A stretch of DNA of 64,000 nucleotides, from contig OZ241831.1 of assembly GCA_965202585.1 (NCBI GenBank), positions 2,790,001 through 2,854,000 on the forward strand, given 5' to 3'. This DNA comes from Thalia democratica (taxonomy: Eukaryota). Of this stretch, positions 1-61,422 are shown piece after piece. Below the pieces are notes generated by a model. The model saw only the letters and a list, made by a program, of their open reading frames with translations. It ran no database searches and was not told the DNA's origin. Both the position numbers and the translations under genes were made by a program. Numbering within the stretch: the first letter of the stretch is position 1; the number at the start of each line of letters is the position of its first letter.

Positions 1-502
1 TATTAAACCAATCACCTTTGAAGTAGATACAACTAACTAGAACACATACAGTTTTAGGGTCCAATTCACTAAACAAATCTTTAATTTTTTCTTTAGTACA
101 GTGTGCAACCCAACCATTGATTATATTTTTTGATTTGTCTGCATTGTTTTTATAGTCTAAAGATTGGATTTGGCATTTAAAAGCAGTTTTCATATCACTC
201 TCGTACTTTGAAACCATCTGAAACGTTTTTGAAGGAAAGACAGAGTTAGCAAGTTCAACTTTTAAATTATTAGAGTCGTAGTTAAGTACATCAGTCAGCG
301 CTTTGAGCTTAGAAAGAAGTTCTTCATCTTTTACAAATCCTAGTGCATCTTCAATCTGATGCTTGGTCGTTCCATCTGAACCTAGTAGTAGCATAGAAAG
401 AGCAAGCGAAATGCTCAGTGGTGAAAAGAAAACGTTTTCGTTTTCATCAGTGATTTCACAGAGCTTTTCAAAGAGATTGATATCAAACGAGTTGAAATTC
501 AT
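1..502 (-). CDS. Serpin, 5' part only (runs off the window start); close paralog of the 24872-25986 and 54376-55494 copies
   Basis: ATG at 502-500 (MNFNSFDINLFEKLCEITDENENVFFSPLSISLALSMLLLGS); same frame and sequence as the full-length serpins; RCL not in window. Confidence 0.85.
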   Translation of the reverse strand, partial: MNFNSFDINLFEKLCEITDENENVFFSPLSISLALSMLLLGSDGTTKHQIEDALGFVKDEELLSKLKALTDVLNYDSNNLKVELANSVFPSKTFQMVSKYESDMKTAFKCQIQSLDYKNNADKSKNIINGWVAHCTKEKIKDLFSELDPKTVCVLVSCIYFKGDWFN

Positions 503-935
503 ACTGATTTTAGACACATCAAACTTTACAAGCTGAAATATAATTTTATATTACTCATTAATAAAACATTATTTAACTATTGTGTTTAAAATAGTTTTAC
601 AGTTTGAAAAGCCTAAAAAAATTTTTATTTGATTATAACTCCCTGAGTTTAAATGAAAAATATTTTGATCAACTTAAAAACCTTAGAGCCAAGTACTTAT
701 TATAGCATTTTTTTTAATTCTACAACATTTTGTTGTGTAAAAAAATTAGACATTTCTCTTGCATGTCTTTTATAAATTGTTAAGTAATGAATAATTACAT
801 TCTGATTACTTATTTAAACACGCGACAAATTCAAAATGCACAACTAATATTCAAAAATAAAATAAGTGATATTAAAGAAAACAGTTTAATTTCTTCAATG
901 TTTGGTGTTGTTTGTTTCGACACTTGTGGCGCTAG

Positions 936-942
936 TGAGTCA
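936..942. promoter_or_regulatory. AP-1-type site TGAGTCA
   Basis: Exact consensus ~434 bp upstream of the ATG at 502, in a motif block conserved among paralogs. Confidence 0.4.
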
Positions 943-3837
943 CTGTTCTTTTAAAGGTAACTACGACCTACAGCAGATTTGTATTTAAAAAGAAAATAAT
1001 TGTTAGCTTGTTAATTCAGTTTATTTCGACAATTAAATTAAAACATGTCTTTATATTGATAAACTTTGTTAATAGATATGGTATATAAGATCTAGTTATT
1101 TTATTTATGAGCAATTTTTATAAATCTAGTTTTTTAATTATTTATTTATATGACCAAAAGTTTGTTTAAGTTTTTGCAGTAAATTAGCTACAGTTAACTT
1201 CATTAAGGCTTTTAAATTTTTAAGTTGGTTTTATTGTATATATAAAAATATAGTTATGTTATTTTAAATGTTACATAAAAACTAAAGTTTAAGATTATAC
1301 TTTTGAAAGTTTGAAAATGCATTAATAGGGGTAGTTTATTACTTTTGAAATGAAAATATAGATAAAATAGTATAAAGTAGCAAAGAGTTTAGTCAATTAA
1401 GTATTATTTATTTCATATTTTTCTAAAACAAGTATAGCTAATAAGCACACATTATATTAATATCATTGAAACTTATTTTTAAAAAGTTTTAAGGCTTGTG
1501 TTTTGTTTGATAACTTTTTACAAACAACGTATAAGTATCATTTCAGCACAGTTAAATATTTAAAGTTCTATTACCACTATGTTATAAAATAATAACAACA
1601 TTATTTAAACTAAACAAATTACCTTAATATTTCCAAAAAATCCAAGTAAAATTAAGTAATTTTATAGATCACTGGCCGACAGCATTTTATAATTTACGGG
1701 GAAATTTTATAAGTTGCTAGCGAGATGAACTTGATAGAAAAAGAAATATTTTATTGGTCACAGTTATTTAAAATAGATGTAGTAAACTGAATAAAAATAT
1801 ACTTAAAAAAATTATAATGAGCGAAAATAAATGACTAGTATATTAATTAATGATTGATAAGTTTACTACGTAATTGTTGTTTTTAACTCATAAACTTTAA
1901 TATTCATAATTAGTATGTTTTTAGCTGAAAAGTACATGGTGGGCCAAACATTTTAGTTTTTCGATATGAAAATTCGGAACCTAGACCGCTATTTACTGTT
2001 TTATGAACTAGTAAAAAAGCACTTAAAAATAAATTAAACTAAGTTCTTATACTTACCCTATGTCTTCAAAGACTACAGTTGAAAAAAAAATTATTGTTCG
2101 AATAGCTTATAATAAGTTATTAGTAGTTGTTTAATACTAAAAAATTGGTTTACTTTGCTAAAGCTTTATTTTTAAAATATCTATGCACAAGTATTTAGAA
2201 AACTGTTAAAACAAATAACATATGTAAACTCTGAAATAAGTAAAAATTTACAAAGGCTAACCAACAAAGGACAATTATAACTAACAAAGAAGGTAATTTA
2301 AAAAAAAGACAATTTAAAAATTGGCTTGTTATTTAAATATACAAAGTTTTTGTCTACTAGAATGGTTATTGTTATCATATATGATTTAAGTTGTTCTAAA
2401 ATAAGTTAAAGCAATATAGAATCTAAATAATTTTCTAACTAAACTACACAACTTATCATAACTTCAAAACTGCTAAACTACAACCTTTTATAACATATAA
2501 TCTCAAGAAATATCGTGGTCATTTTTGAAGATTTAAGTTTAGATAATTAATAATTTTAAAATTTGTTAAATAAATTGAATATTCTTTACTCACTAAATTT
2601 ATTAAAATTTTAAGAACAGTTTGTTTTATACAACTTGATTTACTTTGAACACATTTATGGGTTAATAAACACCAGGCTCCAACCTGTTTAGAAAGAAATT
2701 CATCTAATTATAATCTTAAATAATAGAGTTACAATTTGTTAGAGTAATTATACACTTGAATGTAAGTGAACTGCTATAGCTGATGTTAATATTTTTTTTT
2801 TACTTAAATTCCTCGCAATAGCATCTTAAAAACATGTTCATTTTTTTGTACAATTTTGTGTTGTTTAAAAATACTATTCGCTTAACTTACTATATTATTA
2901 TTTTACAATTTTATTAAAAATCATTATATTATAGTTGTATATAACATTTACTATTTTAATTCTTAGAACTTTACATAAATTACCAGGACATAAGTTGTTC
3001 CTATTACCTTTCAATATAAGCAAATAATGTTTAAATTATCTTATTAACAAATTGCTTGGGAAACCTCGTGCTGTTTTAGATTTTTAAAACTTTAAGTAAT
3101 AAAAATTAATTATTTTTTTTAAATTAATTAATTAAAATTAATTGAAACATATAGGTATTGTTTTTGCAACGTTTATTATCAGTGGTTAAAAAGTATAAGG
3201 TTCTAGTAATATTAAGCGTGTTATTATCATAATCGTATGTTTTTATCTTATACGCTATCTTACGTATCACTAGTAGACTTCAATAAAATCATTATGTAAT
3301 GTTAACTAGTAAATACTATCAGTAAACTAATTTTTAAAATATGATATTTCTTTATCTAATTGTGTTTTTTCATAATTACTTTTTACTCATATAAATGTAA
3401 CATCAATTTATTATTTTGATAAAATTCAGTATATACAAGTAATATATAACGTATACTATTTTTATTTGTATAGCTATCATTTTAGCTTCACACAATTTGT
3501 CATGACATTAGCTGTTTGTTTTTCGTATCAATATTACCAATTAATTTTGAAACATTCCTGCTTATTTACTTCAAAAGTATTTAAATATCAACTATGTAAA
3601 ATATCTATTTACTTGCTGCTGAACCCTTTTAAGTTGTAAAAATTAACTATTTCTATTTGGTTTGTATACAAAACAAGGCCATTGTTAAGATATCTTGATT
3701 TATTTTACAAAATTAACATTTATACAACCAAACGTAACACTATTTATGAACCAAAACCATGCTTAGCATCAGACAAAACTTTATATGATAAAGAATAAAA
3801 CGGGATGTACAAACGAAAGCAATCGATCATAACTTCA

Positions 3838-4474
3838 TTACAACGAAGCTACTTTTCCCATGAACAAAGTTTGGCTTTTGAACAAAATCATCAACACAAA
3901 CGGATGATCAACTGTAAAGCGAATTGGCTCATTGACTGGAGAAAAACCACAAATATAATTCTTAACTAATCCAGTTGCTGCTGCTTCGGACACAAAAAGT
4001 CAACTGGATTGCGTGGACATTTCACTAAAGTCTGCAAGAATTTCATCAAAAGCGTCTTTTACTTATAACAAACGTAAGCATTTGTTCAATTTAGCTTCAT
4101 ACTCAAGTTTGAACTTTGGCATTCTCAACGAGATGTGTTTATTACAGTTTTTATTAATATCTTTGAGGATTTCAACAGTTTTAATGTTTAGTTTTCGGAT
4201 CACACTTTTCGATCCAAATTTCTCATCAGGTAAAATTATCAGCATACTAAAATCTGGCTGCTTGTAAGCAATTCTCACACACTTGAACCCTTTTTCATCA
4301 ACTGAAACATACGGAAAGTCATTTCTCTTTATCATCATTTCAACAGTAGAAGTTTTATTTTCTGTACAATAGAATGGAGCTTTGTAGGTTTGATAACTTT
4401 TGAACTTCTTAAACCAATCACTTTTGAAGTAGATACAACTAATTAGAACACATGCAGTTTCAGGGTCCAATTCA
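3838..4474 (-). pseudogene. 5'-truncated serpin pseudogene, RCL class GLVKNYICGFSPV
   Basis: Homology begins at ELDPETAC (~4474); in-frame TAA at 4063-4065 and a TGA near 4010; 48-nt in-frame deletion near 3984; native stop at 3838-3840. Confidence 0.9.
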
Positions 4475-4741
4475 TTATATATCATAAGTTAAAAACTGCT
4501 AAACTACAACCTTTTATAACATATAATCTCAAGAAATATAGTGGTCATTTTTGAAGATTTAAGTTTGGATAATTAATAATTTTAAAATTTGTTAAATAAA
4601 TTAAATATTCTTTACTCATTTAATTTATTAAAGTTTTAAGAACAGATTGTTTTATACAACTTAATTTACTTTAAACACATTTATGGGTTAAATAACACAA
4701 AGCTCCAACCTGATTCTTTATAAAACTATCATCTTAAATAA

Positions 4742-6830: not shown

Positions 6831-7524
6831 GGTTGTGTTTTTGCATTATTTATTGTCAGTGGTTAACAAGTATAAGGTATAAGTCAAATTAAGCGTGTTA
6901 TTATAGTAATCGTATGTTTTATATTTTTTACGCTATCTTACGTATCGCTAGTACACTTCGATAAAATAATTAGATATCGTTAATTAGTAAATACTATCAG
7001 TAACTGTAATTTTTAATGCATGATTATTTCTTTATCTTATTATGTTTTTTCATAACTACTTTATACTTAACTAAATGTAGCATCAAATTAATATTTTCTT
7101 AAAATACAGTGTATACTAGTAACATATAACGTATAACATTTTGATTCTGAGCTTAACACAATTTATTAAGAAATAAACTGTTTGTATTGCGTATAAACAT
7201 TACCAATTAATTTTAAAACTTTCCTGCTTTTCACACTATTTCAAAAGTATTTAAATGTAACTGAGTAGAATATCTGTTTACTTGCTGCTGAACCCTTTTA
7301 AATTGTAAAAATTAGCTATTTCCGTTTGATTTTATACAAAATAGGACCATAGTTAAGATATCTCAATTTATTTAACAAAAATCAACATTTACACAACCAA
7401 ACCTATTATTTATTAAACTTAACGAAAATCATGCATAACATCAAACACAAATTCATAATAAAAATGAATAAAAATGAATAAAACGGAATATACAAACGAA
7501 AACAATCGAATCCTGAAATCTTCA

Positions 7525-8643
7525 TTACAACGAAGTTACTTTTCCCATGAACAAAGTTTGATTTTTGAACAAAATCATCAACACAAACGGATGATCAACT
7601 GTAAAACGAACTGGTTTTTTGACTGAAGACATAGCACAAAGAAACCTCATGGTTAATCCAGTTGCTGCAGCAGCTTCAGTTCCATTTTCATTTGTCTCAA
7701 TGAATGCTTTGTGGACTGCTTCGGAGACATAAAGTCCACTGGATTGCGTGGACATCGCACTAAAATCTGCAAGACTTTTATCAAAAGCGTCTTTTACTCC
7801 CAACAAACGTAAGCATTTATTCAATTTAGCTTCATAATCAAGTTTGAACTTTGGCATTGCTAGTGAGATATATTCTTCATGGAATTTGTTAATATCTTTG
7901 AGGTTTTCAATGGTTTCAACGTCCAGCTTTTTAATTACACTTTTTAGACCAAACTTCTCATCAGGTAAAATTATCAGCATACTAAAATCTAGTTGCTTGT
8001 AAGGAATTCTCACACACTTAAAACCTTTTTCTTCAACTGAAATATACGGATAGTAATCTCTCTGTGTCATCATTTTAACAGAAGAAGTTTTATTTTCTGT
8101 ACAATAGAATGGGAACTCGTAAGTGTCATAACCTTTGAACTTGTTATACCAATCACCTTTGAAGTAGATAGAACTAACTAGAACACATGCAGTTTCAGGA
8201 TCGAAGCCGCTAAACAATTTTTTAATTTTTCCATTAGTACAACGTGCAACCCAATCATTGATTTTATTTTTTGATTTGTCTGCATTGTTCTTGTAGTCTA
8301 AAGATTGAATTTGGCATTTAAAAGCAGTTTTCATATCACTGTTGTATTTTGCATCCATTATAAATGTTTCTGAGGGAAAGACAGAGTTAACAAGTTCAAC
8401 TTTTAAACTATTAGAATCGTAGTTAAGTACATCAGTCAGCGCTTTGAGCTTAGAAAGAAGTTCTTCATCTTTTACGAATCCTAGTGCTTCTTCAATCTGC
8501 TGCTTGGTTGTTCCATTTGAACCTAGTAGTAGCATAGAAAGAGCAAGCGAAATGCTCAGTGGTGAAAAGAAAATGTTTTCGTTTTCATCAGTGCTTTTAC
8601 AAAGCTTTTCAAAGAGATTGACATCAAACGAGTTGAAATTCAT
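7525..8643 (-). CDS. Intracellular serpin, intact, 372 aa; RCL ENGTEAAAATGLTMRFLCAMSS
   Basis: Serpin motifs FFSPLSISLALSML, IYFKGDW, LPKFK-like MPKFKL, hinge GTEAAAAT, FTVDHPF; ORF track start 8658 is GTG, first ATG is 8643-8641. Confidence 0.95.
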   Translation of the reverse strand: MNFNSFDVNLFEKLCKSTDENENIFFSPLSISLALSMLLLGSNGTTKQQIEEALGFVKDEELLSKLKALTDVLNYDSNSLKVELVNSVFPSETFIMDAKYNSDMKTAFKCQIQSLDYKNNADKSKNKINDWVARCTNGKIKKLFSGFDPETACVLVSSIYFKGDWYNKFKGYDTYEFPFYCTENKTSSVKMMTQRDYYPYISVEEKGFKCVRIPYKQLDFSMLIILPDEKFGLKSVIKKLDVETIENLKDINKFHEEYISLAMPKFKLDYEAKLNKCLRLLGVKDAFDKSLADFSAMSTQSSGLYVSEAVHKAFIETNENGTEAAAATGLTMRFLCAMSSVKKPVRFTVDHPFVLMILFKNQTLFMGKVTSL

Positions 8644-12462: not shown

Positions 12463-13581
12463 TTACAACGAAGTTACTTTTCCCATGAACAAAGTTTGAT
12501 TTTTGAACAAAATCATCAACACAAACGGATGATCAACTGTGAAATGAATTGGCTTATTGACTGAAGACATAGCACAAAGAAACTGCATAGTTAATCCAGT
12601 TGCTGCTGCAGCTTCAGCTCCATTTTCATCTGTCTCAATGAAGGCTTTGTGGACTGCTTCGGACACAAAAAGTCCACTTGATTGCGTGGACATTGCACTA
12701 AAGTCTGCAAGACCACTATCAAAAGCGTCTTTTACTCCCAACAAACGTAAGCATTTATTCAATTTAGCCTCATACTCAAGTTTGAACTTTGGCATTGCTA
12801 GTGAGATATATTCATCATGGAATTTGTTAATATCTTTGAGGTTTTCAATAGTTTCAACGTCCAGTTTTTCTATCACCCTTTTCAATCCAAATTTCTCATC
12901 AGGCAGAATTATCAGCATACTAAATTCTGGTTGCTTGTAAGGAATTCTCACACACTTGAACCCTTTTTCTTCAACTGAAATATACGGATAGTAATCTCTC
13001 TGTGTCATCATTTTAACAGTAGAAGTTTTATTTACAGTACAATAGAATGTTTCGTCGTTGGTTAACCTTGACTTGAACTTTTCATACCAATCGCCTTTGA
13101 AGTAGATACAACTAACTAGAACACATGCAGTTTCAGGATCCAATTCACTAAACAAATCTTTAATTTTTCCATTAGTACAATGTGCAACCCAATTATTGAT
13201 AATTTTTTTTGATTTTTTGGTATTGTTCTTGTAGTCTAAAGACTGAATTTGGCATTTGAAAGCAGTTTTTATATCACTCTTGTATTTTGCATCCATTATA
13301 AATGTTTCTGAGGGAAAGACAGAGTTAGCAAGTTCAACTTTTAAACTATCAGAATCGTAGTTAAGTACATCATTTAACGCTTTGAGCTTAGAAAGAAGTT
13401 CTTCATCTTTTACAAATCCTAGTGCTTCTTCAATCTGCTGCTTGGTTGTTCCATTTGAACCTAGTAATAGCATAGAAAGAGCAAGCGAAATGCTCAGTGG
13501 TGAAAAGAAAATGTTTTCGTTTTCATCAGTGCTTTCACAAAGCTTTTCAAAGAGATTGACATCAAACGAGTTGAAATTCAT
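12463..13581 (-). CDS. Intracellular serpin, intact, 372 aa; RCL ENGAEAAAATGLTMQFLCAMSS
   Basis: Full ORF with all serpin motifs; hinge P14 is Ala instead of Thr. Confidence 0.95.
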   Translation of the reverse strand: MNFNSFDVNLFEKLCESTDENENIFFSPLSISLALSMLLLGSNGTTKQQIEEALGFVKDEELLSKLKALNDVLNYDSDSLKVELANSVFPSETFIMDAKYKSDIKTAFKCQIQSLDYKNNTKKSKKIINNWVAHCTNGKIKDLFSELDPETACVLVSCIYFKGDWYEKFKSRLTNDETFYCTVNKTSTVKMMTQRDYYPYISVEEKGFKCVRIPYKQPEFSMLIILPDEKFGLKRVIEKLDVETIENLKDINKFHDEYISLAMPKFKLEYEAKLNKCLRLLGVKDAFDSGLADFSAMSTQSSGLFVSEAVHKAFIETDENGAEAAAATGLTMQFLCAMSSVNKPIHFTVDHPFVLMILFKNQTLFMGKVTSL

Positions 13582-14558
13582 ACTGATTTTAGACACTACA
13601 AACTTTACAAGCTGAAATATAGTTCTATATAATTCTTTAATTAAGCATTATTTAAATACATTGTATAAAATAATTTTACAGTTTAAAAAGCCTTAAAAAT
13701 TTCTTAGTTGATTATAACTCCCTGAGTTTAAATGAAAAATATTTGATTAACTTTAAAACTTTAGAGCCAAGTATTTATTATAGCAATTTTAATAATACTG
13801 CAAAATATTGATCTGTAACAAAATAAATGTATTTCTAGTATGTATTTCATACCTGAATAAGTTGTTAAGTAACTGAATAAGTACATTCTGATTACGTAAT
13901 TAAACACGCAACTAGTTCAATATGCACAATTAATAATCAACCATAAAGCAACTTACTCACGAAAATTAATTTTGTTTTTTAATAATCACTGTGGTTTGGT
14001 CTACCACTTTTGGCGCTAATGAGTTGTATTTCGTTTTAATTGAGATAACTGCTGCAGGCAGAAGTTGTTTATATTTAACAAAATAATAATAAAGATCGGA
14101 ATAAAAAATGACTTTTCTAGTTTTTTATTAAAGTACATGGTTTTCCTACCGTGTCCTTTAGTTTTTGTAATTAAAAAGCTACTATAATATTTTTTGACCT
14201 AAAATAAATTGGTGTTCTAGTTGTGTTATATAATAACCAAGTTTTATGAATAATATTTTTCAGTTTTATATGCAAAAACATGCCTTAATACTTTTTAAAA
14301 TTTCCAACGTAAAATCGCTCTAGGTAGTGAATAGTTTTACTTGTATAATCTTGTAAATAAATCGATTGTCAAGTACTGTCACATAAACAAATAAAATTTT
14401 TAGAAATATAACAAATTAAAATTATGCTTTTAATCATGTTTATCATTAGAAGTCATGTTTTAATTTAATTGTCGAAATAAATTTAATTAACAAGCTAACA
14501 GTTCTTTTCTTTTTAAATACAAATCTTCTGCCGGTAGTAGTTACTTTTAACAGAACAG

Positions 14559-14565
14559 TGACTCA
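14559..14565. promoter_or_regulatory. AP-1-type site TGACTCA
   Basis: ~454 bp upstream of the ATG at 15019; same orientation relative to the gene as in minus-strand copies. Confidence 0.4.
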
Positions 14566-15018
14566 TTAGCGCCACAAGTGTCAAAACGAAAAATAGCTAG
14601 AGTTGAAGAAATTAAATTGTTTTTATTAGTATCACTTATTTTATGATTTATTATTAATTATTCAAATATAGATTTTGTTACGTGTTTAAATAACTATTAA
14701 AAATTCGCTTCTAAGCATTGTTGCATTGTTCTAACACTTATATCAATTATTAAAACTCGAATTATTTTAAGTTTAAACTGTACAAACATTCATGCTACTT
14801 TAAAATAGAACTTAATACTATAACTAAAGCAGAGCTTTAATAAACATTTGGTTATATACAAAGTAATAAAAATTAATTTAAGCAAATAAGTAGAGTAATA
14901 GTTTCCTAGGCTTTTACAAACGTTTAAAACTTTTTGAAAAATATTATTTAAATAATATTAATTATTCATGAGTAACATTGAAAATTTTTTAGGTTGTAAA
15001 GTTAGTTTTCAAATCAGT

Positions 15019-16137
15019 ATGAATTTCAATTCGTTTGATGTCAATCTATTTGAAAAGATCTGTGAAAGTACTGATGAAAACGAAAACATTTTCTTTTCGC
15101 CGCTGAGCATTTCGCTTGCTCTTTCTATGCTACTACTAGGTTCAAATGGAACAACCAAGCAGCAGATTGAAGAAGCACTAGGATTTGTAAAAGACGAAGA
15201 ACTTCTTTCTAAGCTCAAAGCGTTAAATGATGTACTTAACTACGATTCTAATAGTTTAAAGGTTGAACTTGTTAACTCTGTCTTTCCTTCAGAAACATTT
15301 ATAATGGATGCAAAATACAAGAGTGATATGAAAACTGCTTTAAAATGCCAAATTCAGTCTTAAGAGTACAAGAACAATACCAAAAAATCAAAAAAAATTA
15401 TCAATAATTGGGTTGCACATTGTACTAATGGAAAAATCAAAAATTTGTTTAGGAAATTAAACCCTGAAACTGCATGTGTTCTAGTTAGTTGTATCTACTT
15501 CAAAGGTGATTGGTATAAAAAATTCGAACGTTATAACACTTACGAATTATCATTCTATTGTATAGAAACCAAAACTTCTACTGTTAAAATGATGAGACGG
15601 GAAAGTTATTACTCTTACATTTCAGTTGATGAAAAAGGGTTCAAGTGTGTGAGAATACCTTACAAGCAACCAATGTTTAGTATGCTGATAATTTTACCTG
15701 ATGAAAAGTTTGGATTGAAAAGTGTGATCGAAAAACTGGATGTTGATACTATTGAAAACCTCAAAGATGTTAACAAGTTCCATGATGAATATGTTTCGCT
15801 AACAGTTCCAAAGCTCAAACTTGAGTATAAAACTAAATTGAACAAATGCTTACATTTGTTGGGAGTAAAAGACGCTTTTGATAGTTGTCTTGCAGATTTT
15901 AGTGCAATGTCCACGCAATCAACAGGACTATTTGTGTCCGAAGCAGTCCACAAAGCATTTTTTGAGACGAATGAAAATGGAACTGAAGCTGCTGCTGCAA
16001 CTGGATCAACTTCTGTTGACATTTGTATATCTTCATCAGAAGAAGAGTTAATACCCTTTACAGTTGATCATCCGTTTGTGTTGATGATTTTGTTTAAAAA
16101 TCAAACTTTGTTCATGGGAAAAGTAACTTCGTTGTAA
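15019..16137 (+). pseudogene. Full-length serpin with one nonsense codon; RCL GSTSVDICISSSEEE
   Basis: TAA at 15361-15363 replaces Leu (TTA in paralogs); frame is otherwise intact to the stop at 16135-16137. Confidence 0.88.
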
Positions 16138-18284
16138 TGAAGTTTTAATCGATTGTTTTCGTTTGTACATCCTGTTTTATTCTTTTTTATAATGAAGTTT
16201 TGTTTGATGTTTGCATAGTTTTTGTTGAGTTTAATAAATATTAAGTTTGATTGTGTAAATGTTAATTTTTGTTAAATAAAGTAAGATTCGTAAACAATAT
16301 AATTTAAAAGGGTTCAGCTGCTAGTAAATAAATATTCTACTTAGTTAAATTTAAATACTTTTGAAGTAGTGTGATAAGCAGGAATGTTTCAAAATTAATT
16401 GGAAATATTGATACGCAATACAAACAACTAGTGTCATAACTTTTTATGTAGTTCTAAGATTAAAATAATATACGTTATGTATTTCTAATATGAACTGAAT
16501 TTTTATCTAAAATTCAAAGTGATGTTACATTTAGTTAAGTAAAAAGTAATGATGAAAAATCATTAGTAGACAAAGAAATTATCATGTTTAAACTAAGTTA
16601 CATATGTTATTAACTAGTTAATGGTATATAGTTATTTTTTGTAGTCTATAAGCGACACGTTAGAGATAATAAACATACTATTACGATAATAACACGCTTA
16701 ATTTGACTAGAACGTTTTACTATATATAATAATAACATTCAACTAAACAAATTACCTTAATATTTCCAAAAAATCCAAGTAAAATTAAGTAAATTTTTTA
16801 GATCATTGGCCGATATCATTTTATATTACTCGGGGAAGTTTTACAATTTGCTAGATAATAGACGAATTTTTTTTACGGGTCGCAGTTATTTAAAACAGTT
16901 GTGGTAAACAAAAGGAAAAAAAATTAAACGAAATAATTGAAAATGAATTACTAGTAGTTAACAACTGATAAATTTACAACTTAATTGTAAATTTTAACTA
17001 CAACAACTTGATTTTATTCTAGTATGTTTTTAGCTGAAAAGTACATCGTGGACCAAACATTTTAGTTTTTGGAAAATTAGGCACCTGGACCGCTATTTGC
17101 CGTGTTCTGATCGGAATAGTTTAAAACAATTTCATATAATTTAAGCTAAATTTCAATACTCCCCATAGATCTTCGAAAAATATAGTTGAGTAAGTTATAT
17201 ACTTCGAACAGCTTACAATAAGTTATTAGTAGTAGTTTAACAATAAATATAATTCACTTTGTAAAGCTTTATTATTTAAATATTTATTTATAAGTATTTA
17301 GAAAACTGTATAAACAAATAACATGTGTAAACTCTGAAATAAGTGGAAACTGACATAAGCTAACCAACAAAGGACAATTATAACTAACAAAGAAGGTCAT
17401 TTATAAAAAAAAATCAAAAGTTGCTTTGTTATTTTCATATACCAAGTTTTTGTCTACTATATTGGTTATTGTTATCATAAATGATTTAAGTTGTACTAAA
17501 AAAAATTTTAAGCGACGTACGATCTAATTATTTTTATAACTAAACTACACAACTTATATCAGAAGTTCTAAACTGCTAAACTAAAACCTTTTTAAATACA
17601 TAAATAATCTCAAGAAATATCGTGGTCATTTTTGAAGATTTGAGTTTGAATAATTAACATTTTTAAACATTGGTAATTAAACTAAATATTATTTACTCAT
17701 TAAATTTATTAAAATTTTTAAGAACATTTTGTTTTAAACAACTTGATTTAGTTTAAACACATTTATGGGTTAATAAACACCAGGCTCCAACCTGATTTCA
17801 AAGATAGAGTATCAAAAAAATTCATAAAACTATAATCTTAAATAATATGGTCACAATTTTTAGTGTAATTATACACTCGAATGCAAGTGAACTGCTTTAG
17901 CTGATGTTAATATTATTTTTTTATAAAAAATTGAATTAAATCCTCGCAATAGCATCTTTAAAACATGATCATTTTTTTGTACAAAATTGTCTTGTTTAAA
18001 ATACTATTCGCTTAACTTATTATAACATCATTTTAACAATTTAATAAAATTAATTATATCATAGTTGAATTCAACATTTACTTTTTAACTCTTATATTAA
18101 CTTTAAAGCTTTACATAAGTTATCAAGACATAATTTGTTTCTATTACGTATATTACATATCAATATCCATTTATTTTTTAGTTAACTGAGTAAGTTATCT
18201 TATTAACAAATTGCTGCGGAAACCTCGTACTGTACTTAATTTAAAAACCTTAAATTAATTAATTACTTTCACTTACAAAACATG

Positions 18285-18675
18285 TTTTGTATTAATGTTT
18301 TTGTCATTTTTATATTGTTTTAACTCTATTATGCAACCCTTAATCATTCTAAAGTCACCTAAATCAATTTGTGTACAAATATAACCGCAAAATCACAAAG
18401 TTTGGCATCTAAACTGTTATGAGCTTTAGTACTTAGTTATAGACCATAGAAAGTACCACTATTAACTGCTTATTTATAGTGGTATACAAATTGGTTTAGG
18501 TGACTTCAGAATGATTAAAGGTAGCATAAAAGAGTTTAAACATCTTAAAAATGACGAAAACATCATTATCACAAATTCGGATAAAGGTTCTGGTGTTGTA
18601 GTTTAAATTTTTCACATTATGTTAGCAAAATGAAAAATATATTAAACGATTACACCGAATTGAAACATATAGGTT
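18285..18675 (+). mobile_element. PLE RT relic with inverted repeat; loop orientation A
   Basis: Paralogous to 6442-6830. Confidence 0.65.
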
Positions 18676-19352
18676 ATGTTTTATGCAATGTTTATTGTCA
18701 GTGGTTAACAAGTAGAAGGTATAAGTCAAATTAAGCGTGTTATTATCATAATCGTATACTTTATATCTTATACGCCATCTTACGTATCGCTAGTACACTT
18801 CGATAAAATCATTATATATCGTTAACTAGTAAATACTATCAGTAAACTAATTTTTAAAACATGATATTTCTTTATCTATTTGTGTTTTTTCATAATTACT
18901 TTCTACTCAAACAAATGTAGCATCAATTTAACATTTTGATAAAATTCAGTATATACAAGTAATATAAAACGTATACTATTTTTATTCTTAGAGCTTCACA
19001 CAATTTGTCATGATATTAGCTGTTTGTTTTGCGTATCAATATTAAATTAATTTTGAAACGGTCCAGCTTATCACAATACTTCAAAATTATTTAGATGTAA
19101 CTGAGTAGAATATCTATTTACTTGCTGCTGAACCCTTTTAAGTTGTAAAAAAATAGCTATTTCCGTTTGATTTTTATACTAAACAAGATCATTGTTAAGA
19201 TATCTTAATTTATTTAACAAAAATCAACATTTACACAACCAAACCTATTCTTTATTAAACTCAACGAAAACCATGCATATCATCAAACACAACTTCATAA
19301 TAAAAAAGAATATTACGGGATGTACAAACGAAAACAATCGAATAAAACTTCA

Positions 19353-20912: not shown

Positions 20913-20919
20913 TGAGTCA
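20913..20919. promoter_or_regulatory. AP-1-type site TGAGTCA
   Basis: 442 bp upstream of the ATG at 20471. Confidence 0.4.
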
Positions 20920-43024: not shown

Positions 43025-43415
43025 GTTTTGTAATAATGATGTTTTTGTTTTTTTATAATGTTTAACTCTTTTATGCAACCCTTAATCTTTCTGAAGTCGC
43101 CTAAATCAATTTGTGTACCACTATAACCGCAAAATCACAAAGTTTGGCATCTAAACTGTTATGAATTTCAGTACTTTGTTATAGACCATAGAAAGTACCC
43201 CTATTAACTGCTTATTTATAGTGGTATACAAATTGGTTTAGGTAACTCCAGAATGATTAAGGGTTGCATTAAAGAGTTTAAACAACTTAAAAATGACAAA
43301 AACATCATTATCACAAATTCGGATAAAGGTTCTGGTGTTGTAGTTTAAATTCTTCACATTATGTTAGCAAAATGAAAAATATATTAAACGATTGCACCAA
43401 ATTGAAACATATAGG
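43025..43415 (+). mobile_element. PLE RT relic with inverted repeat; loop orientation A
   Basis: Paralogous to 18285-18675. Confidence 0.65.
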
Positions 43416-44093: not shown

Positions 44094-45211
44094 TTACAAA
44101 GAAGTTACTTTTCCAATGAACAAAGTTTGACTTTTGAACAAAATTATCAACACAAACGGATGATCAACTGTAAAGCGAATTGGCTCATTGACTGGTAAAA
44201 AACACAAATATAATTCTTAACTAATCCAGTTGCTGCTGCAGCTTCAGTTCCATTTTCATCTGTCTCAAAAAAGGCTTTGTGGACTGCTTCGGAGACATAA
44301 AGTCCACTTGATTGCGTGGACATTGCACTAAAGTCTGCAAGACCACTATCAAAAGCGTCTTTTACTCCCAACAAACGTAAGCAATCGTTCAATTTAGCCT
44401 CATATTCAAGTTTGAACTTTGGCATTCTCAACGAGATGTCTTTATCACAGTATTTATTAATATCTTTTAGGTTTTCAACAGTTTTAATGTCCAGTTTTTG
44501 GATCACACTTTTCAATCCAAATTTCTCATCAGGTAAAATTATCAGCATACTAAAATCTGGTTACTTGTAAGAAATTCTGACGCACTTGAACCCTTTTTCA
44601 TCAACTGAAACATACGGAAAGTCATTTCTCTTTATCATCATTTTAACAGTAGAAGTTTTATTTTCTGTACAATAGAATGGAGCTTCGTAGGTGTTATAAT
44701 GTTTGAACTTATCAAACCAATCACCTTTAAAGTAGATACAACTAACTAGAACACATACAGTTTCAGGAATCAATTTTTTAAACAAAACTTTAATTTTTCC
44801 ATTAGTACAACGTGCAACCCAATCATTGATTTTATTTTTAAATTTGTCTGCATTGTTGTTGTAGTCTAAAGACTGGATTTGACATTTGAAAGCAGTTTTC
44901 ATATCATTCTTGTATTTTGCATCCATTATAAATGTTTCTGAGGGAAAGACAGAGTTAGCAAGTTCAACTTTTAAACTATTAGAATCGTAGTTAAGTACAT
45001 CATTTAACGCTTTGAGCTTAGAAAGAAGTTCTTCATCTTTCACAAATCCTAGTGCTTCTTCAATCTGCTGCTTGGTTGTTCCATTTGAGCCTAGTAGTAG
45101 CATAGAAAGAGCAAGCGAAATGCTCAGTGGTGAAAAGAGAATGTTTTTGTTTTCATCAGTGATTTCACAGAGCTTTTCAAACAGATTGATATCAAACGAG
45201 TTGAAATTCAT
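44094..45211 (-). pseudogene. Full-length serpin with nonsense codon and 1-nt deletion; RCL class GLVKNYIC
   Basis: CAA>TAA at 44561-44563; 1 nt missing in the A-run at ~44196-44203 relative to 19353-20471 (length 1118 vs 1119). Confidence 0.88.
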
Positions 45212-48940: not shown

Positions 48941-50062
48941 TCAATACAACGAAGTAACTTTTCCCATGAACAAAGTTTGACTTTTGTGTAATATCATTAA
49001 CACAAACGGATGATCAATTGTGAAATGAATTGGCCCTTTGACTTGTATAGAAGCACAATATTTCCTACAAACTGATCTAGTTGCTGCTGCAGCTTCAGTT
49101 CCATTTTCGTTTGTCTCAATAAATGCTTTGTGGACTGCTTCGGACACAAATAGTCCACTTGATTGCGTGGACATTGCACTAAAGTCTGCAAGACCACTAT
49201 CAAAAGCGTCTTTTACTCCCAACAAACGTAAGCAATCGTTCAATTTAGCCTCATATTCAAGTTTGAACTTTGGCATTTTCAACAAGACATACTCACAATG
49301 GAATTTATTAATATCTTTGAGGTTTTCAATAGTTTCAACGTCCAGTTTTTTGATTACACTCTTTAGACCAAATTTCTCATCAGGTAAGATTATCAGCATA
49401 CTAAAATCTGGTTGCTTGTAAGGAATTCTGACACACTTGAACCCTTTCTCTTTAACTGAAATATAAGAGAGGAAACTTTCCCGTCTCATCATTTCAACAG
49501 CAGAAGTTTTATTTTCTGTACAATAGAATGGAGCTTTGTAGGTGTTACAACCTTTGAACTTGTTATACCAATCACCTTTGAAGTACATACAACTAACAAG
49601 AACACATGCAGTTTCAGGGTCCAATTCACTAAACAAGTCTTTAATTTTTCCATTAGTATAACGTGCAACCCAATCATTGATTTTAGTTTTTGATTTGTCT
49701 GCATTGTTCTTGTAGTCTAAAGATTGGATTTGGCATTTAAAAGCAGTTTTCATATCACTTCTGTACTTTGCAACCATCTGAAATGTTTCTGAGGGAAATA
49801 CAGAGTTAACAAGTTCAACTTTTAAACTATTGTAATCGTAGTTCAGTACAACATTTAACGCTTTGAGCTTAGAAAGAAGTTCTTCATCTTTCACAAATCC
49901 TAGTGCTTCTTCAATCTGCTGTTTGGTTGTTCCATTTGAGCCTAGAAGTAGCATAGAAAGAGCAAGCGAAATGCTCAGTGGTGAAAAGAAAATGTTTTCG
50001 TTTTCATCAGTGCTTTCACAGAGCTTTTCAAAGAGATTGACATCAAACGAGTTGAAATTCAT
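48941..50062 (-). CDS. Intracellular serpin, intact, 373 aa; RCL ENGTEAAAATRSVCRKYCASIQ
   Basis: Full ORF; C-terminus extended by one residue (SLY*). Confidence 0.95.
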   Translation of the reverse strand: MNFNSFDVNLFEKLCESTDENENIFFSPLSISLALSMLLLGSNGTTKQQIEEALGFVKDEELLSKLKALNVVLNYDYNSLKVELVNSVFPSETFQMVAKYRSDMKTAFKCQIQSLDYKNNADKSKTKINDWVARYTNGKIKDLFSELDPETACVLVSCMYFKGDWYNKFKGCNTYKAPFYCTENKTSAVEMMRRESFLSYISVKEKGFKCVRIPYKQPDFSMLIILPDEKFGLKSVIKKLDVETIENLKDINKFHCEYVLLKMPKFKLEYEAKLNDCLRLLGVKDAFDSGLADFSAMSTQSSGLFVSEAVHKAFIETNENGTEAAAATRSVCRKYCASIQVKGPIHFTIDHPFVLMILHKSQTLFMGKVTSLY

Positions 50063-54375: not shown

Positions 54376-55494
54376 TTACAACGCAGTTACTTTACCCATG
54401 AACAAAGTTTGACTTTTGAACAAAATCATCAACACAAACGGATGATCAACTGTGAAATGAATTGGTTCTCGGTTGCATTTAATGGCTGTATGTGGTATTA
54501 ATCTTGACGCAGTTGCTGCTGCAGCTTCAGTTCCATTTTCATTTGTCTCAATGAATGCTTTGTGCACTGCCTCGGAGACGTAAAGTCCACTTGATTGCGT
54601 GGACATTGCACTAAAATCTGCAAGACTTTTATCAAAAGCGTCTTTTACTCCCAACAAACGTAAGCATACGTTCAATTTAGCTTCATACTCAAGTTTGAAT
54701 TTTGGCATTCTCAACGAAACATATTCATAATTGAACTTGTTAACATCTTTGAGGCTTTCAATAGTTTCAACGTCCAGTTCTTTAATTACACTTTTTAGAC
54801 CAAATTTCTTATCAGGTAGAATTATCAGCATACTAAAATCTGGTTGCTTGTAAGGAATTCTCACACACTTGAACCCTTTTTCATCAACTGAAATGTAAGA
54901 GAAAGAACATTCCCGTCTCATCATTTTAACAGTAGAAGTTTTATTTTCTGCACAATAGAATTGAGCTTTATTGGTTTTATAACTTTTGAACTTATTAAAC
55001 CAATCACCTTTGAAGTAGATACAACTAACTAGAATACATGCAGTTTTAGAGTCCAATTCACTAAACAAATCTTTAATTTTTTCATTAGTACAACGTGCAA
55101 CCCAATCATTGATAATTTTTTTTGATTTGTCTGCATTGTTCTTGTAGTCTAAAGATTGAATTTGGCACTTAAGTGCAGTTTTCATATCACTTTCGTACTT
55201 TGCAACTATCTGAAATGTTTCTGAGGGAAATACAGAGTTAGCAAGTTCAACTTTTAAACTATTAGAATCGTAGTTAAGTACATCATTTAACGCTTTGAGC
55301 TTAGAAAGAAGTTCTTCATCTTTTACAAAACCTAGTGCTTCTTCAATCTGATGCTTGGTTGTTCCATTTGAGCCTAGTAGTAGCATAGAAAGAGCAAGCG
55401 AAATGCTCAGTGGTGAAAAGAAAATGTTTTCGTTTTCATCAGTGATTTCACAGAGCTTTTCAAAGATATTGACATCAAACGAATTGAAATTCAT
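54376..55494 (-). CDS. Intracellular serpin, intact, 372 aa; RCL ENGTEAAAATASRLIPHTAIKC
   Basis: Full ORF with serpin motifs. Confidence 0.95.
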   Translation of the reverse strand: MNFNSFDVNIFEKLCEITDENENIFFSPLSISLALSMLLLGSNGTTKHQIEEALGFVKDEELLSKLKALNDVLNYDSNSLKVELANSVFPSETFQIVAKYESDMKTALKCQIQSLDYKNNADKSKKIINDWVARCTNEKIKDLFSELDSKTACILVSCIYFKGDWFNKFKSYKTNKAQFYCAENKTSTVKMMRRECSFSYISVDEKGFKCVRIPYKQPDFSMLIILPDKKFGLKSVIKELDVETIESLKDVNKFNYEYVSLRMPKFKLEYEAKLNVCLRLLGVKDAFDKSLADFSAMSTQSSGLYVSEAVHKAFIETNENGTEAAAATASRLIPHTAIKCNREPIHFTVDHPFVLMILFKSQTLFMGKVTAL

Positions 55495-58400
55495 ACCGAT
55501 TTTAGACACTACAAACTTTACAAGCTGAAATATAATTCTATATTACACATTAATAAAACATTATTTAACTATTGTGTATAAAATATTTTTACAGTTTGTT
55601 AATCTTAATAAAATAATTAGTTTATTATAACTTCCTGAGTTTAAATGCAAAATATTTTGATCAACCTAAAAACCTTAGAGCCAAGTATTCACTAAAGCAA
55701 TTTTTATAATACTACAAAGTATTGTTGTGTAACAAAATAAGATATATATCTAGTATGTCTTTCATACCTGACTAAATTGTGAAGTAACTGAATAATTACA
55801 TTCTGATTACGTAATTAAAAACGCAACAAACTCAAAATGCACAACTAATAATCAACTATATAGTAAGTAACTTTAAACATTTTATTTTATTTTTTAGTGT
55901 TTACTGTGGTTTGTTCTAACACTTTTTGCGCTAATGAGTTATATTTCGTTTTGATTGAGATAATAGGCAGAATTTGTATATATTAAGCAGAAAAAAAATG
56001 GCTCAACTAAACTTTTAAGTTATATATTGGAATTATAACTAGTTTTTCTTAATGCACATGGTTTTTTCACCGTGTCTTTTAGATTTTGTAATAAAAAAGC
56101 TACAATATTTACTTTTTAACCTTTAAAATGTTATAAATCGGTATTTTAGTTGTAGTATATAAATTTCAGCTGATACTTGTTAATATATAAATTTTTATTT
56201 AAATTAATTAATATAGTTAACTACTTTTGAAATGATTAGATAAATAAGTTAATAAAACTTTGCAAAATGTTTAGACTAAATAGTTATTTGTGTTCAGTTT
56301 AAAAAAATAAAATTAAAGCACTATAAACAAAATATTCAAATATGTTCTTAAAAAAATTTTAATGAAAAATTTTAGATTGTTTTTTATATTTTATTAACTT
56401 TAAAAGTAACTTACAAACAAGATATAACTTTTTGATTAGCACGTAAAAGAAAGTTAAAACTTCTCCTTTTATTATGATATAAAATTACAGCAATATCGTT
56501 TAAGTTAAATAAAATAACCTTACAAATTTTCCAGAATGGTAAAACAACTTTTAAAATAAACAATTTTAGATTACTAATCGGCAAATTATAAAAGAGACTC
56601 ACTTTGTAGAAAAATCTTTCATAGGTTGCAGTTAACTAAAGTAGGTAAAATATGAAAGTACAATTATAAACTAAATTATCAATTTAACAAGCAAAAAAAA
56701 TACATTAGTAAATACTAATTGATAAACTTAGAACCTAATTATAAGTTTTGAATACGAAAATACAACTTAAAAATATACTTTTAGCTGAAAATTTTATCGT
56801 GGGCCAGGTATTTTTGTTTTTAAACCGAAAAATTCGGCTCCTGGACCGCTCTTTGTCATCTCGTGTTATAGATGGTCAACGTTAACAAATATTTTTGTCA
56901 TAGATCGTCAAGGGTTATCGTCAAATAAAGTTTATACTATGAACAGTTTGTAATAATCTATAGTAGTTTTTTTATTACATAAAAATCAGTTTGCTTTGTT
57001 AAAGTTTTAATTCTAAAGTATATAATAACAAGTTATCAGTGAGCTGTTTAATTAAATTACGTGAGTAAGATCTAAAAGAAGAAAATACAAAAGCTAACCA
57101 ACTAAGAACAATTTTTACCAGAAAAAAGGTCATTTAAAAGTGAGAGATTGTTAAAAAGCTACTTTGTGATTTTGATATATCCTGTTCTCGTCTACTCAAA
57201 TTTATATTATTATCATAAAAATTAAGTTGTAATAAAAGTAAAATAAAGTCAAATCAATTTAGAGTTTAAATACTTTTTTAAGTAGTTCATACTACTTATA
57301 CCATAAGGTCAAAACCGCTAAACTTTAATTTCTCTAAATAAATATAATTTATTGAACAACAAAAACAGCGCTCAAAATAGTTAGTATTTGAACTGGTGCA
57401 CAAAAAGTCCTTTCGGTTATCGAGTCGCACACCACAGATACCTTTTAACGTCTTGGCCAAAACAGATACATGATTTTAACAAATATACTTGTCAACTGGA
57501 GTTGAGTTTGAATAGTTGTTAATTTTATACTAGCTTTAATAACAATTACGCTAAACATTTTATATATACTCACAATATTTATTAAAAAAAAATAAATGTT
57601 TGTTTTTAAAGCAACTTGATTTACTTATACCATATTTATAGTTGAACAAACACTAAGCTCCAAACTTTTAACACACATCCTATTTCTTATTATTTTATTT
57701 ACGGTCCGATGTAGCAGGTTTTATGTAAATTTTGTCTTTCTATCTCCTAAAAATCAATTTCATCATTGATACTTTCTATGATCTGTGAGATCCCACAATA
57801 ATAGTTACACAAATTTCCATTTAAGCATCAACTTCTAGCTTCTCCTCAACGTAAAATATTCTCTGCAAAACTTAAGAAAAAACATACTGGAACACTCAAG
57901 TCAATCATTTCAGTACTTCTTGTGCAAAAGTAAAACATTTGAAAAAAAATAAAGTTTACTATAGATAGATTAACAAATATCAGAAATAAGCTTAGTATTA
58001 GTAAACACATAGACGTGAAAAACATAGTATTTGATGCAATGAAGATCAACTTAAGATAAAAAGTAATGCTTAAACAACAATATTTTTATTTAACACTGAA
58101 AACAGTAACTCAAATGTAATATAAATGTTCTTCAAATAAAATTACAGCTGTTTCAATGAGCTCTGGAATGAAAGTTACTGTTTACTGAACAACAAAAAAG
58201 CGTTCAAAACAATTTGTCTTAGGCCTTGGTGCACGAAAAACCTTTCAGTTATCGAGTCGTACACCACTTGGATACATTTTAACGTCTTGTCCAAGACAAG
58301 CTATACTGGACTCTGGCTATATTTCTGGAAATAAAGCTAACTTTTATAGACTCTTTTTCAAACTCTACATTTCAATAAAAATACAAACAAGACTAATAAA

Positions 58401-59858: not shown

Positions 59859-59865
59859 TGACTCA
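59859..59865. promoter_or_regulatory. AP-1-type site TGACTCA
   Basis: ~439 bp upstream of the ATG at 60304. Confidence 0.4.
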
Positions 59866-60303
59866 TTAGCGCCACAAGTGTCAAAACAAACAACAGCAAG
59901 CATTGAAGAACTCATTATTTCTTTAGTATCACTTATTTTATGATTGAATATCAATTATTCAAATATAGATTTTGTTACGTGTTTAACTAACTACTAAAAA
60001 TTCGCTTCTTAGCATTGTTGAATTGTTCTAACACTTATATCAAATATTAAAACTGGAATTATTTTTAAGTTTAAACTGTACTAACATTCATGCTACTTTA
60101 AAATATAACTAAAGCAGAGCTTTAATAGACATTTGGTTATATATAAAGTTATAAAAATTAATTTAAGCAAATAAGTAGAGTAATAGTTTCCTAGGCTTTT
60201 ACAAACTTTTAAAACTTATTGAAAAATATTAGTTATATAATATTAATTATTCATGATTAACATTGAAAATGTTTTAGGTTGTAAAGTTAGTTTTTAAATC
60301 AGT

Positions 60304-61422
60304 ATGAATTTCAATTCGTTTGATGTCAATCTTTTCAAAAAGCTTTGTGAAATCACTGATGAAAACGAAAACATTTTCTTTTCACCACTGAGCATTTCGC
60401 TTGCTCTTTCTATGCTACTTCTAGGTTCAAATGGAACAACCAAGCAGCAGATTGAAGAAGCACTAGGATTTGTAAAAGATGAAGAACTTCTTTCTAAGCT
60501 CAAAGCGTTAAATGATGTACTTAACTACGATTCTGATAGTTTAAAAGTTGAACTTGCTAACTCTGTATTTCCCTCAGAAACATTTATAATGGATGCAAAA
60601 TACAAGAGTGATATGGAAACTGCTTTTAAATGCCAAATCAAATCTTTAGACTACAAAAACAATACAGACAAATCTAAAAATAAAATCAATGATTGGGTTG
60701 CACATTATACTAATGGAAAAATTAAAAACTTGTTTAGGAAATTGTTTCCTGAAACTTCATGTGTTCTAGTTAGTTGTATCTACTTCAAAGGTGATTGGTA
60801 TAAAAAATTCGAACGTTGTAACACTTTCAAATTATCATTCTATTGTACAGAAAACAAAACTTCTACTGTTAAAATGATGAGACGGGAAAGTTATTACTCT
60901 TACATTTCAGTTGATGAAAAAGGTTTCAAGTGTGTCAGAATTCCTTACAAGCAACCAGAATTTAGTATGCTGATAATTTTCCTTGATGAAAAGTTTGGAT
61001 TGAAAAGTGTGATCGAAAAACTGGATGTTGCAACTATTAAAAACCTCAAAGATGTTAACAAGTTCCATGATGAATATGTTTTGCTAACAATTCCAAAGCT
61101 CAAACTTGAGTATAAAACTAAATTGAACGAATGCTTACATTTGTTGGGAGTAAAAGACGCTTTTGATAGTGGTCTTGCAGATTTTAGTGCAATGTCCACG
61201 CAATCCAGTGGACTATTTGTGTCCGAAGCAGTCCACAAAGCGTTTTTTGAGACGAATGAAAAAGGAACTGAAGCTGCTGCTGCAACTGGATCAACTTCTG
61301 TTGACATTTGTATATCTTCATCAGAAGAAGAGTTAATACCCTTTACAGTTGATCATCCGTTTGTGTTGATGATTTTGTTCAAAAATCAAACTTTGTTCAT
61401 GGGAAAAGTTACTTCGTTGTAA
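60304..61422 (+). CDS. Intracellular serpin, intact, 372 aa; RCL EKGTEAAAATGSTSVDICISSSEEE
   Basis: Full ORF; recent duplicate of 39706-40824. Confidence 0.95.
   Translation: MNFNSFDVNLFKKLCEITDENENIFFSPLSISLALSMLLLGSNGTTKQQIEEALGFVKDEELLSKLKALNDVLNYDSDSLKVELANSVFPSETFIMDAKYKSDMETAFKCQIKSLDYKNNTDKSKNKINDWVAHYTNGKIKNLFRKLFPETSCVLVSCIYFKGDWYKKFERCNTFKLSFYCTENKTSTVKMMRRESYYSYISVDEKGFKCVRIPYKQPEFSMLIIFLDEKFGLKSVIEKLDVATIKNLKDVNKFHDEYVLLTIPKLKLEYKTKLNECLHLLGVKDAFDSGLADFSAMSTQSSGLFVSEAVHKAFFETNEKGTEAAAATGSTSVDICISSSEEELIPFTVDHPFVLMILFKNQTLFMGKVTSL

Follow-up and report, generated by a model that had tools for sequence, protein, structure and literature searches.

A tandem array of clade-B-like serpin loci with five classes of reactive-centre loop in contig OZ241831.1, a putative protease-inhibitor repertoire

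The stretch of DNA analysed here (the window) comprises 64,000 nt of contig OZ241831.1 (assembly GCA_965202585.1, deposited as Thalia democratica; positions 2,790,001 to 2,854,000, forward strand), with 25% G+C and no runs of N, and it carries a tandem array of serpin loci that share one scaffold and differ most in the reactive-centre loop (RCL), the segment that sets the protease specificity of a serpin. We read the array, with a probability of about 0.8, as a lineage-specific birth-and-death array of single-coding-exon, clade-B-like, inhibitory and probably cytosolic serpins with diversified specificities. On this reading an intact protein would act as a suicide substrate, its exposed RCL being cut by the target protease at P1-P1', after which the conserved hinge (E-N-G-T-E-A-A-A-A-T) would insert in sheet A and trap the enzyme. 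The seven intact genes would then present five baits of equal length, each RCL class inhibiting a different protease or set of proteases, and the specificities covered would be hydrophobic or aromatic, possibly acidic and possibly basic.

Serpin loci, their loops and the gene model

A first-pass annotation of the window had proposed 15 loci with a nearly identical scaffold, and all of them were recovered, each in the place assigned to it, by tblastn with one copy as the query and by subsequent nucleotide and codon alignment; the number of serpin-homologous loci in the window is exactly 15. Seven are intact, one is cut by the window edge, four are full-length pseudogenes and three are fragments. 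The intact genes run for 372-373 codons from ATG to stop, their proteins are 78-96% identical to one another, and each of the five RCL classes (A to E) includes at least one of them. The loci are listed below, with a hyphen in the loop at the predicted P1-P1' bond.

1..517, minus strand: c01, the 5' 167 codons, with the ATG at 502; the remainder lies beyond the window start and the RCL outside the window
3838..4485, minus strand: c02, pseudogene fragment (codons ~148-372) with 2 stops and class B RCL GLVKNYI-CGF; a 48-nt deletion takes out the hinge, and the 5' half is missing, with a palindromic insertion (4802-6007) in its place
7525..8643, minus strand: c03, intact, class A RCL GLTMRFL-CAMSS, predicted P1 Leu335; hinge through RCL end at ~7606-7689
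12463..13581, minus strand: c04, intact, class A RCL GLTMQFL-CAMSS, P14 Ala
15019..16137, plus strand: c05, full-length pseudogene, class C RCL GSTSVDI-CISSSEEE, TAA at codon 115
19353..20471, minus strand: c06, intact, class B RCL GLVKNYI-CDF
24206..24316, minus strand: c07, fragment of the last 36 codons with the class D P' side AIKCNREPIHF...
24872..25986, minus strand: c08, full-length pseudogene, class D RCL, 4-nt deletion near codon 245, hinge TESAAVT
29098..29354, plus strand: c09, 5'-truncated copy of the last 85 codons, class C RCL, with a Gly-to-Arg change within the conserved FMGKV motif
33386..34498, minus strand: c10, full-length pseudogene, class C variant RCL GSTFVDM-CASS, broken by one stop and two 3-nt deletions, of which one falls in the hinge and makes it shorter
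39706..40824, plus strand: c11, intact, class C RCL GSTSVDI-CIFSSEEE, hinge and RCL at 40660-40743; the copy modelled with AlphaFold2
44094..45211, minus strand: c12, full-length pseudogene, class B, stop at codon 224 and a 1-nt deletion in the RCL
48941..50062, minus strand: c13, intact, 373 codons, class E RCL RSVCRKY-CASIQ
54376..55494, minus strand: c14, intact, class D RCL ASRLIPH-TAIKC
60304..61422, plus strand: c15, intact, class C RCL, P16 Lys, 96% identical to c11

The consensus of inhibitory serpin hinges has Glu at P17, Gly at P15, Thr or Ser at P14 and small residues from P12 to P9. All seven intact copies carry a hinge of the form E-N/K-G-T/A-E-A-A-A-A-T, the Ala at P14 occurring in c04, and the length of the loop is identical across the classes in these copies, in keeping with inhibitory serpins, in which the scissile bond lies 16-17 residues after P17. 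P1 was assigned by counting 17 residues from P17, a rule that gives ...AVMM-C in frog SERPINB1-like matches, and by this count the predicted P1 residues of classes A to E are Leu, Ile, Ile, His and Tyr.

Class A: GLTM(R/Q)FL-CAMSS; P4-P1 M-R/Q-F-L, P1' C; c03, c04
Class B: GLVKNYI-C(D/G/V)F; P4-P1 K-N-Y-I, P1' C; c06, c12, c02
Class C: GST(S/F)VD(I/M)-C...; P4-P1 S-V-D-I, P1' C; c05, c09, c10, c11, c15
Class D: ASRLIPH-TAIKC; P4-P1 L-I-P-H, P1' T; c08, c14, and c07 for the P' part only
Class E: RSVCRKY-CASIQ; P4-P1 C-R-K-Y, P1' C; c13

The five loop strings quoted in the first-pass annotation stand as written, except that the fragment at 24206 contains the P' part only (AIKCNREP...). Its description of the loops as unrelated fits class D and, in part, class C; the loops of classes A, B and E can still be aligned on the P' side. 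Cys occupies P1' in four of the five classes, as it does in SERPINB6, B8 and B9, and class C has an Asp one residue ahead of the canonical P1. As guesses from these residues, classes A, B and E might be directed at chymotrypsin- or elastase-like serine proteases or at papain-like cysteine proteases, class E alternatively at a basic-specific enzyme that cuts one residue earlier, and class C at an Asp-specific enzyme, if the cut falls one residue before the canonical position. CrmA is represented in the PDB by cleaved chains, of which only the 41-residue C-terminal peptide 1c8o_B was matched, so that a register count against it was impossible.

The intact genes carry every sequence hallmark of inhibitory serpins. 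The five intact copies scanned against Pfam (c03, c06, c11, c13 and c14, one per RCL class) matched Serpin (PF00079) over model positions 4-369 of 370, with E values of 1e-102 to 1e-107, and c04 and c15 align over their full length to c03 and c11 at 89-96% amino-acid identity; a protein atlas gave no annotation other than "serpin". All intact copies also contain the motifs of the breach and shutter (FKGDW, FSPLSI and VHKAF). The AlphaFold2 model of c11 (predicted local distance difference test, pLDDT, 88.9; predicted template modelling score, pTM, 0.88) has the serpin fold with loop 327-341 disordered, and Foldseek aligned it to solved serpins with template modelling (TM) scores of 0.84-0.92, the best structural matches being SERPINB3/B4, serpin 42Da, conserpin and SERPINB1 (TM 0.86-0.92). 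By sequence, the top PDB matches were conserpin and then leukocyte elastase inhibitor (SERPINB1), and the closest named matches in both sequence and structure belong to clade B, at 34-38% identity.

In the c11 model hinge residues 321-328 are drawn as a strand, in sheet A, and the top structural matches are cleaved or latent serpins. This loop-inserted state is common in AlphaFold2 predictions of serpins, and we attribute the relaxed-like conformation to the prediction and not to the c11 protein.

The coding sequence is without an intron, the entire domain forming a single uninterrupted open reading frame (ORF) in each intact copy. The N-terminus begins at helix A (MNFNSFDVNLF...), residues 1-24 have no hydrophobic core, and a search of the 2.5 kb upstream found no conserved exon for a signal peptide in phase with the splice acceptor described below; the intronless and signal-peptide-less character that had been claimed for the scaffold is thereby borne out. 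Since the class C copies have an in-frame TAA 9 nt ahead of the ATG, MNFNSF... is taken as the start of the protein. In every copy a T-rich acceptor (TTTCAG/TTTTAG) precedes the ATG by 30 nt and might serve for a trans-spliced leader or for an intron in the 5' untranslated region (UTR), and in all copies ~150 nt downstream of the stop are conserved and 3'-UTR-like, with AATAAA at ~+105 and ~+145; c14 has a distinct 3' UTR variant, common to c08. The proposed gene model would thus consist of the T-rich acceptor, a 30-nt leader, a 372-codon ORF and a ~150-nt 3' UTR with AATAAA, as exemplified by two segments.

55495..55530, minus strand: 5' leader of c14 with its T-rich acceptor
7375..7524, minus strand: 3'-UTR-like segment of c03

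The proteins end in ...GKVTSL without an extension, the intact copies have 8-11 cysteines each, including one loop Cys, and in five of the seven an N-G-T sequon falls within the hinge. The cysteine content including the loop Cys and the position of the sequon, together with the lack of a signal peptide, suggest that the intact proteins are cytosolic.

Divergence of the loop against scaffold and flanks

Loop divergence was compared with that of the scaffold and of the surrounding non-coding DNA. The RCL statistics come from an alignment of the coding sequence (CDS) only; a wide MAFFT alignment that took in the flanks broke the RCL into gap blocks. In each of the ten class pairs the 45-nt RCL core diverged more than any other of the 323 codon-aligned windows, with p-distances between classes of 0.33-0.76 against 0.07-0.11 for the median window, a contrast well outside what chance would give. 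The non-coding flanks, at p 0.08-0.30, also lie below the RCL core, and because the RCL distance exceeds that of non-coding DNA, relaxed constraint alone is insufficient as an explanation. At the protein level, the mean pairwise amino-acid difference in 10-residue windows was 0.72 for the RCL, 0.57 for the next window and 0.15 on average outside the RCL, so that the loop, as the top window, stands above the other surface loops.

The same picture emerged when synonymous and non-synonymous changes were separated by the Nei-Gojobori method. The scaffold gave non-synonymous distances (dN) of 0.06-0.10 and synonymous distances (dS) of 0.18-0.31, and the RCL (P8-P12') gave dN of 0.34-1.07; in comparisons among classes A, B and E the dS of the RCL was like that of the scaffold, with omega (dN/dS) of 1.5-4.4. 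Pooled by region, the RCL had dN 0.70 and omega 1.27, compared with dN 0.02-0.20 and omega 0.15-0.64 elsewhere, in agreement with the earlier claim of RCL-specific diversification on one scaffold. Most A/B/C/E comparisons had significantly more non-synonymous change per synonymous change in the core than in the scaffold, with Fisher p values of 0.0001-0.03. Within a class, on the other hand, the core shows only 0-2.5 non-synonymous differences, while the corresponding scaffolds differ by 14-48.

Because the loop exceeds neutral DNA in divergence between classes and yet is constant within a class, we propose that it has undergone diversifying selection or loop replacement between classes, followed by purifying selection within each class, and we infer that selection drove or maintained the loop differences.

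Secondary variable patches lie at residues 142-148, 171-178, 193-198 and 255-262, which by the order of elements in the c11 model correspond to the helix F-s3A linker, s4C with its preceding loop, the s3C-s1B turn and s2C; omega over residues 131-160 is ~1.1. In serpins sheet C lies next to the RCL, and several serpins have exosites on it. The patches at 193-198 and 255-262 co-vary with RCL class, and that at 171-178 does not: c03 differs from c04 there, and c04 matches c10.

Growth of the array and alternative accounts

The array has grown by duplication of single units and of larger segments; its copies exchange tracts through gene conversion or unequal recombination, and many of them have decayed. 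The conversion that the first-pass annotation had invoked is visible in several ways. In the pairwise homoplasy index (PHI) test with 230 informative sites, 0 of 1000 permutations were at or below the observed value, with the same result when the RCL was left out, and clonal descent is therefore rejected. The nearest neighbour of each copy changes along its length, and the body of c04 is a mosaic with tracts closest to c03, c15, c05 and c10. In c12 a 120-nt tract (~44306-44425) is identical to the neighbouring c13 at 36 consecutive variable sites (p<0.0005), a tract that is absent from its near-twin c06.

In c08 the 5' and far-3' flanks are like those of the class E unit c13 (84-98% identity), whereas from CDS nt ~400 to ~500 nt past the stop (~24336-25586, ~1.2 kb) it resembles class D c14, reaching 96-100% identity to c14 over CDS nt 450-850; c07 is the leftover 3' fragment behind this inserted class-D tract. 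Given that c08 is a chimaera and that the leftover is still in place, the class-D loop moved into another unit together with its own 3' UTR variant, and a single exchange can thus carry both. An insertion of ~100-110 nt in the 5' flank is found only in c08 (~26240-26350) and c13 (~50310-50400), marking them as sister units despite their differing RCLs. We also considered whether c07 and c09 might be alternative RCL exons, and rejected this; both are truncated duplication units, on the other strand from intact genes or distant from them, no intron interrupts the intact genes at this point, and each RCL is contiguous with its own body.

The demonstrable recombination also fits a different history for the loops, in which the RCL classes are old paralogue lineages whose scaffolds, especially in the 5' third, were homogenised by gene conversion while selection shielded the RCL from it, so that the loop would be "hypervariable" by retained age and not by fast evolution. 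Pooled dS climbs from 0.145 in codons 1-70, the lowest value, to 0.47 in codons 201-265, the highest, which is compatible with stronger homogenisation at the 5' end; class D combines an RCL at random-level distance (p 0.62-0.76) with the most divergent 3' flank (K 0.29-0.38), the combination expected of an older lineage, and the c12-c13 tract ends ~75 nt before the RCL. Against this history, the non-coding flanks are not more diverged than scaffold dS, so that whole units look young, the RCL dS of classes A, B and E is near scaffold dS with a non-synonymous excess, the seven intact copies are monophyletic with respect to every relative found, and, as c08 demonstrates, conversion can carry the RCL along. 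We regard the old-lineage history as possible, if the less probable course of events, and it is largely complementary to the reading of the array as a diversified inhibitor repertoire.

Part of the copy number is due to two recent segmental duplications at ~95% identity, detected by self-comparison of the window, and duplication of whole genes, as it had been proposed, is supported.

14437..24302, no strand assigned: segmental duplication block with c05 (plus), c06 (minus) and c07, 95.6% identical to 39127-49040, which contains c11 (plus), c12 (minus) and the 3' end of c13; homology ends at the c13 RCL
38174..43394, no strand assigned: second segmental duplication, 95% identical to 58805-64000, in which the c11 unit corresponds to the c15 unit

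Two block pairs that are 95-96% identical over 5-10 kb might also be uncollapsed haplotypes, and c11/c15 and c06/c12 differ by only 1-4%, as would be expected if divergent haplotypes of a highly heterozygous marine animal had been laid in tandem by the assembly and the real array were much smaller. We consider such an artefact unlikely even as a partial explanation. The window has no runs of N, the duplicated blocks alternate with unique sequence and differ at their ends, and the paired copies are unlike in state (c06 is intact and c12 broken, c11 intact and c05 broken); moreover, c12 has received a conversion tract from c13 next to it, and a collapse of the near-identical blocks would still leave units of all five RCL classes.

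The least probable account, that these are non-inhibitory serpins (storage, chaperone or structural) with loops drifting without constraint, could draw on the unusual predicted P1 residues, the many pseudogenes and the AlphaFold2 placement of the hinge in sheet A, but it is opposed by the inhibitory hinge consensus and invariant loop length of all intact copies, by a loop that evolves faster than neutral flanks, beyond the reach of drift, and stays constant inside each class even where the scaffolds differ, and by the fact that a loop-inserted AlphaFold2 state is not evidence on the native protein.

Apart from the possible haplotype pairs, certain points weigh against the reading of the array as cytosolic inhibitors with selected loops. 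Ile and His at P1 are unusual in inhibitory serpins, and the targets named above are guesses from P1 counting. In comparisons with classes C and D the synonymous sites of the RCL are saturated, and for this reason selection is inseparable from loop replacement or older divergence in these classes; for pN/pS in the 15-codon core, no pair is singly significant above 1 (binomial p 0.07-0.8). Finally, the 30 nt from the acceptor to the ATG form an open frame in classes A, B, D and E, so that an undetected upstream coding exon is conceivable.

Decay is evident in the seven of 15 loci that are dead or fragmentary, consistent with the birth-and-death process that had been put forward. The insertion beside c02 is a nested palindrome (4802-6007), with outer arms at 4802-5045 and 5764-6007 (244 nt, 100% complementary) and inner arms at 5038-5264 and 5543-5769 (227 nt, 98%). 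A 28-bp minisatellite (consensus GCACAATATGAATTAAAAAATTAGTTTT) occupies 36299-38554 upstream of c11 in ~80 copies, and the same repeat (GCACAATATGAATTAAAAAATTAGTTTT) is present in ~13 copies at the homologous site upstream of c15 (58807-59177).

Opposite the 3' third of most copies lie antisense ORFs of 120-127 aa, two of which were scanned and had no Pfam match. We did not retain them as genes and treat them as by-products of coding-strand composition, conserved only via the serpin.

12557-12940, plus strand: antisense ORF
15660-16022, minus strand: antisense ORF
40347-40709, minus strand: antisense ORF
49038-49421, plus strand: antisense ORF
60945-61307, minus strand: antisense ORF

Outside the serpin loci, ORFs of at least 70 aa in the window gave no Pfam match, and no Rfam family was found in the window. 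No protease, caspase or immune genes were found adjoining the copies, and the window gives no particular indication of a role in immunity or cell death.

Relatives and known serpin repertoires

In a protein tree of 32 sequences, in which frog and shark SERPINB1 were the only representatives of the vertebrate clades, the seven intact copies group in a single clade (100/100) separate from all metagenomic relatives, and the array and its marine metagenomic relatives together form a 100/100 clade apart from a group made up of frog and shark SERPINB1, an oyster serpin and prokaryotic serpins. The nearest relatives, at 59-69% identity, come from short Tara Oceans contigs whose G+C is similar, each with a different RCL. 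A metagenome scan for arrays among the relatives gave one distant locus only, and the single long Tara Oceans contig carries one serpin. The Tara Oceans relative P0012 (411 aa) has the loop ...AAAATGIRMCYESSAATGIRMCYERS..., an in-frame repeat of the hinge end and loop. Several metagenomic relatives, namely P0004, P0007, P0017, P0018, P0026 and P0029, deviate from the hinge consensus of inhibitors (EEKIEAAAAT and EDGTVAVTVT are examples), and because of these departures the wider family probably includes non-inhibitory members.

Clade B serpins are characterised by the lack of a cleavable signal peptide and by short N and C termini (PMC3880077), and the array resembles vertebrate clade B (SERPINB1/B6/B9) in both respects and in its ...KVTSL end. 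It is also like the mouse clade B expansions, with their paralogue sets Serpinb1a-c, b3a-d and b6a-d (PMC3880077), in having paralogues that share a scaffold and differ mostly in the RCL, and its proteins would work in the manner of clade B serpins. In contrast, clade B genes have a conserved structure of 7 or 8 exons (PMC1308813) and the coding sequences of the array are intronless; the array groups with relatives from marine metagenomes and not with the vertebrate sequences in the tree, and its P' side is 4 residues longer than that of SERPINB1, as counted on the frog SERPINB1-like matches.

Another parallel is the single intronless Serpinb6-like gene of Ciona intestinalis (Kaiserman & Bird 2005, PMC1308813), likened here by description, which is likewise clade-B-like, intronless and from a urochordate, but is one gene where the array has 15 loci and five RCL classes. 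If the host is a tunicate, an intronless gene of the Ciona Serpinb6-like kind is most likely the ancestor type of the array; the Tara Oceans relatives and the acceptor at -30 would agree with a pelagic tunicate that trans-splices a leader.

Tandem serpin arrays with the RCL as a focus of positive selection have been described for rodent SERPINA1/A3 (PMC12646145), bovine SERPINA3 (PMC2373789) and Cotesia vestalis teratocytes (PMC10735303). Tandem duplication and an RCL that is the hot spot of positive selection and of functional divergence are common to the present array and to rodent Serpina3/Serpina1, bovine SERPINA3, woodrat SERPINA and the Cotesia vestalis serpins, whereas the rodent, bovine, woodrat and Cotesia serpins are secreted and intron-containing and those of the array are signal-peptide-less, have a single coding exon and show visible tract exchange. 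Manduca sexta serpin-1 and other insect genes with mutually exclusive RCL exons also place many baits on one scaffold; unlike them, the array has each RCL in its own complete gene, and no RCL exons share a body. Tick serpins are known for the repertoire pattern as well, and the array is a further instance of the kind of serpin repertoire seen in rodents, ticks and wasps.

A more far-reaching proposal would be a germline "cassette" system, in which gene conversion would shuffle a module, made up of the RCL, the neighbouring sheet-C patches and the 3' UTR, among scaffolds and provide pelagic tunicates with an intracellular innate-defence repertoire against proteases of pathogens, parasites or prey. 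We think this improbable; were it true, it would generate new inhibitor combinations by a logic like that of other diversified invertebrate immune gene families.

No paper on such a serpin expansion in tunicates, pelagic ones included, was found in the literature searched. The locus is of an ordinary kind and leaves the understanding of serpin function and evolution unchanged, and its value lies in being a compact example of how a protease-inhibitor repertoire evolves, with scaffold, five baits, conversion tracts and dead copies within 62 kb. The seven intact genes provide natural RCL variants on one body that could be used for specificity studies, and, if the host is a pelagic tunicate, the array would extend the intronless clade-B-like serpin of Ciona to a large lineage-specific expansion.

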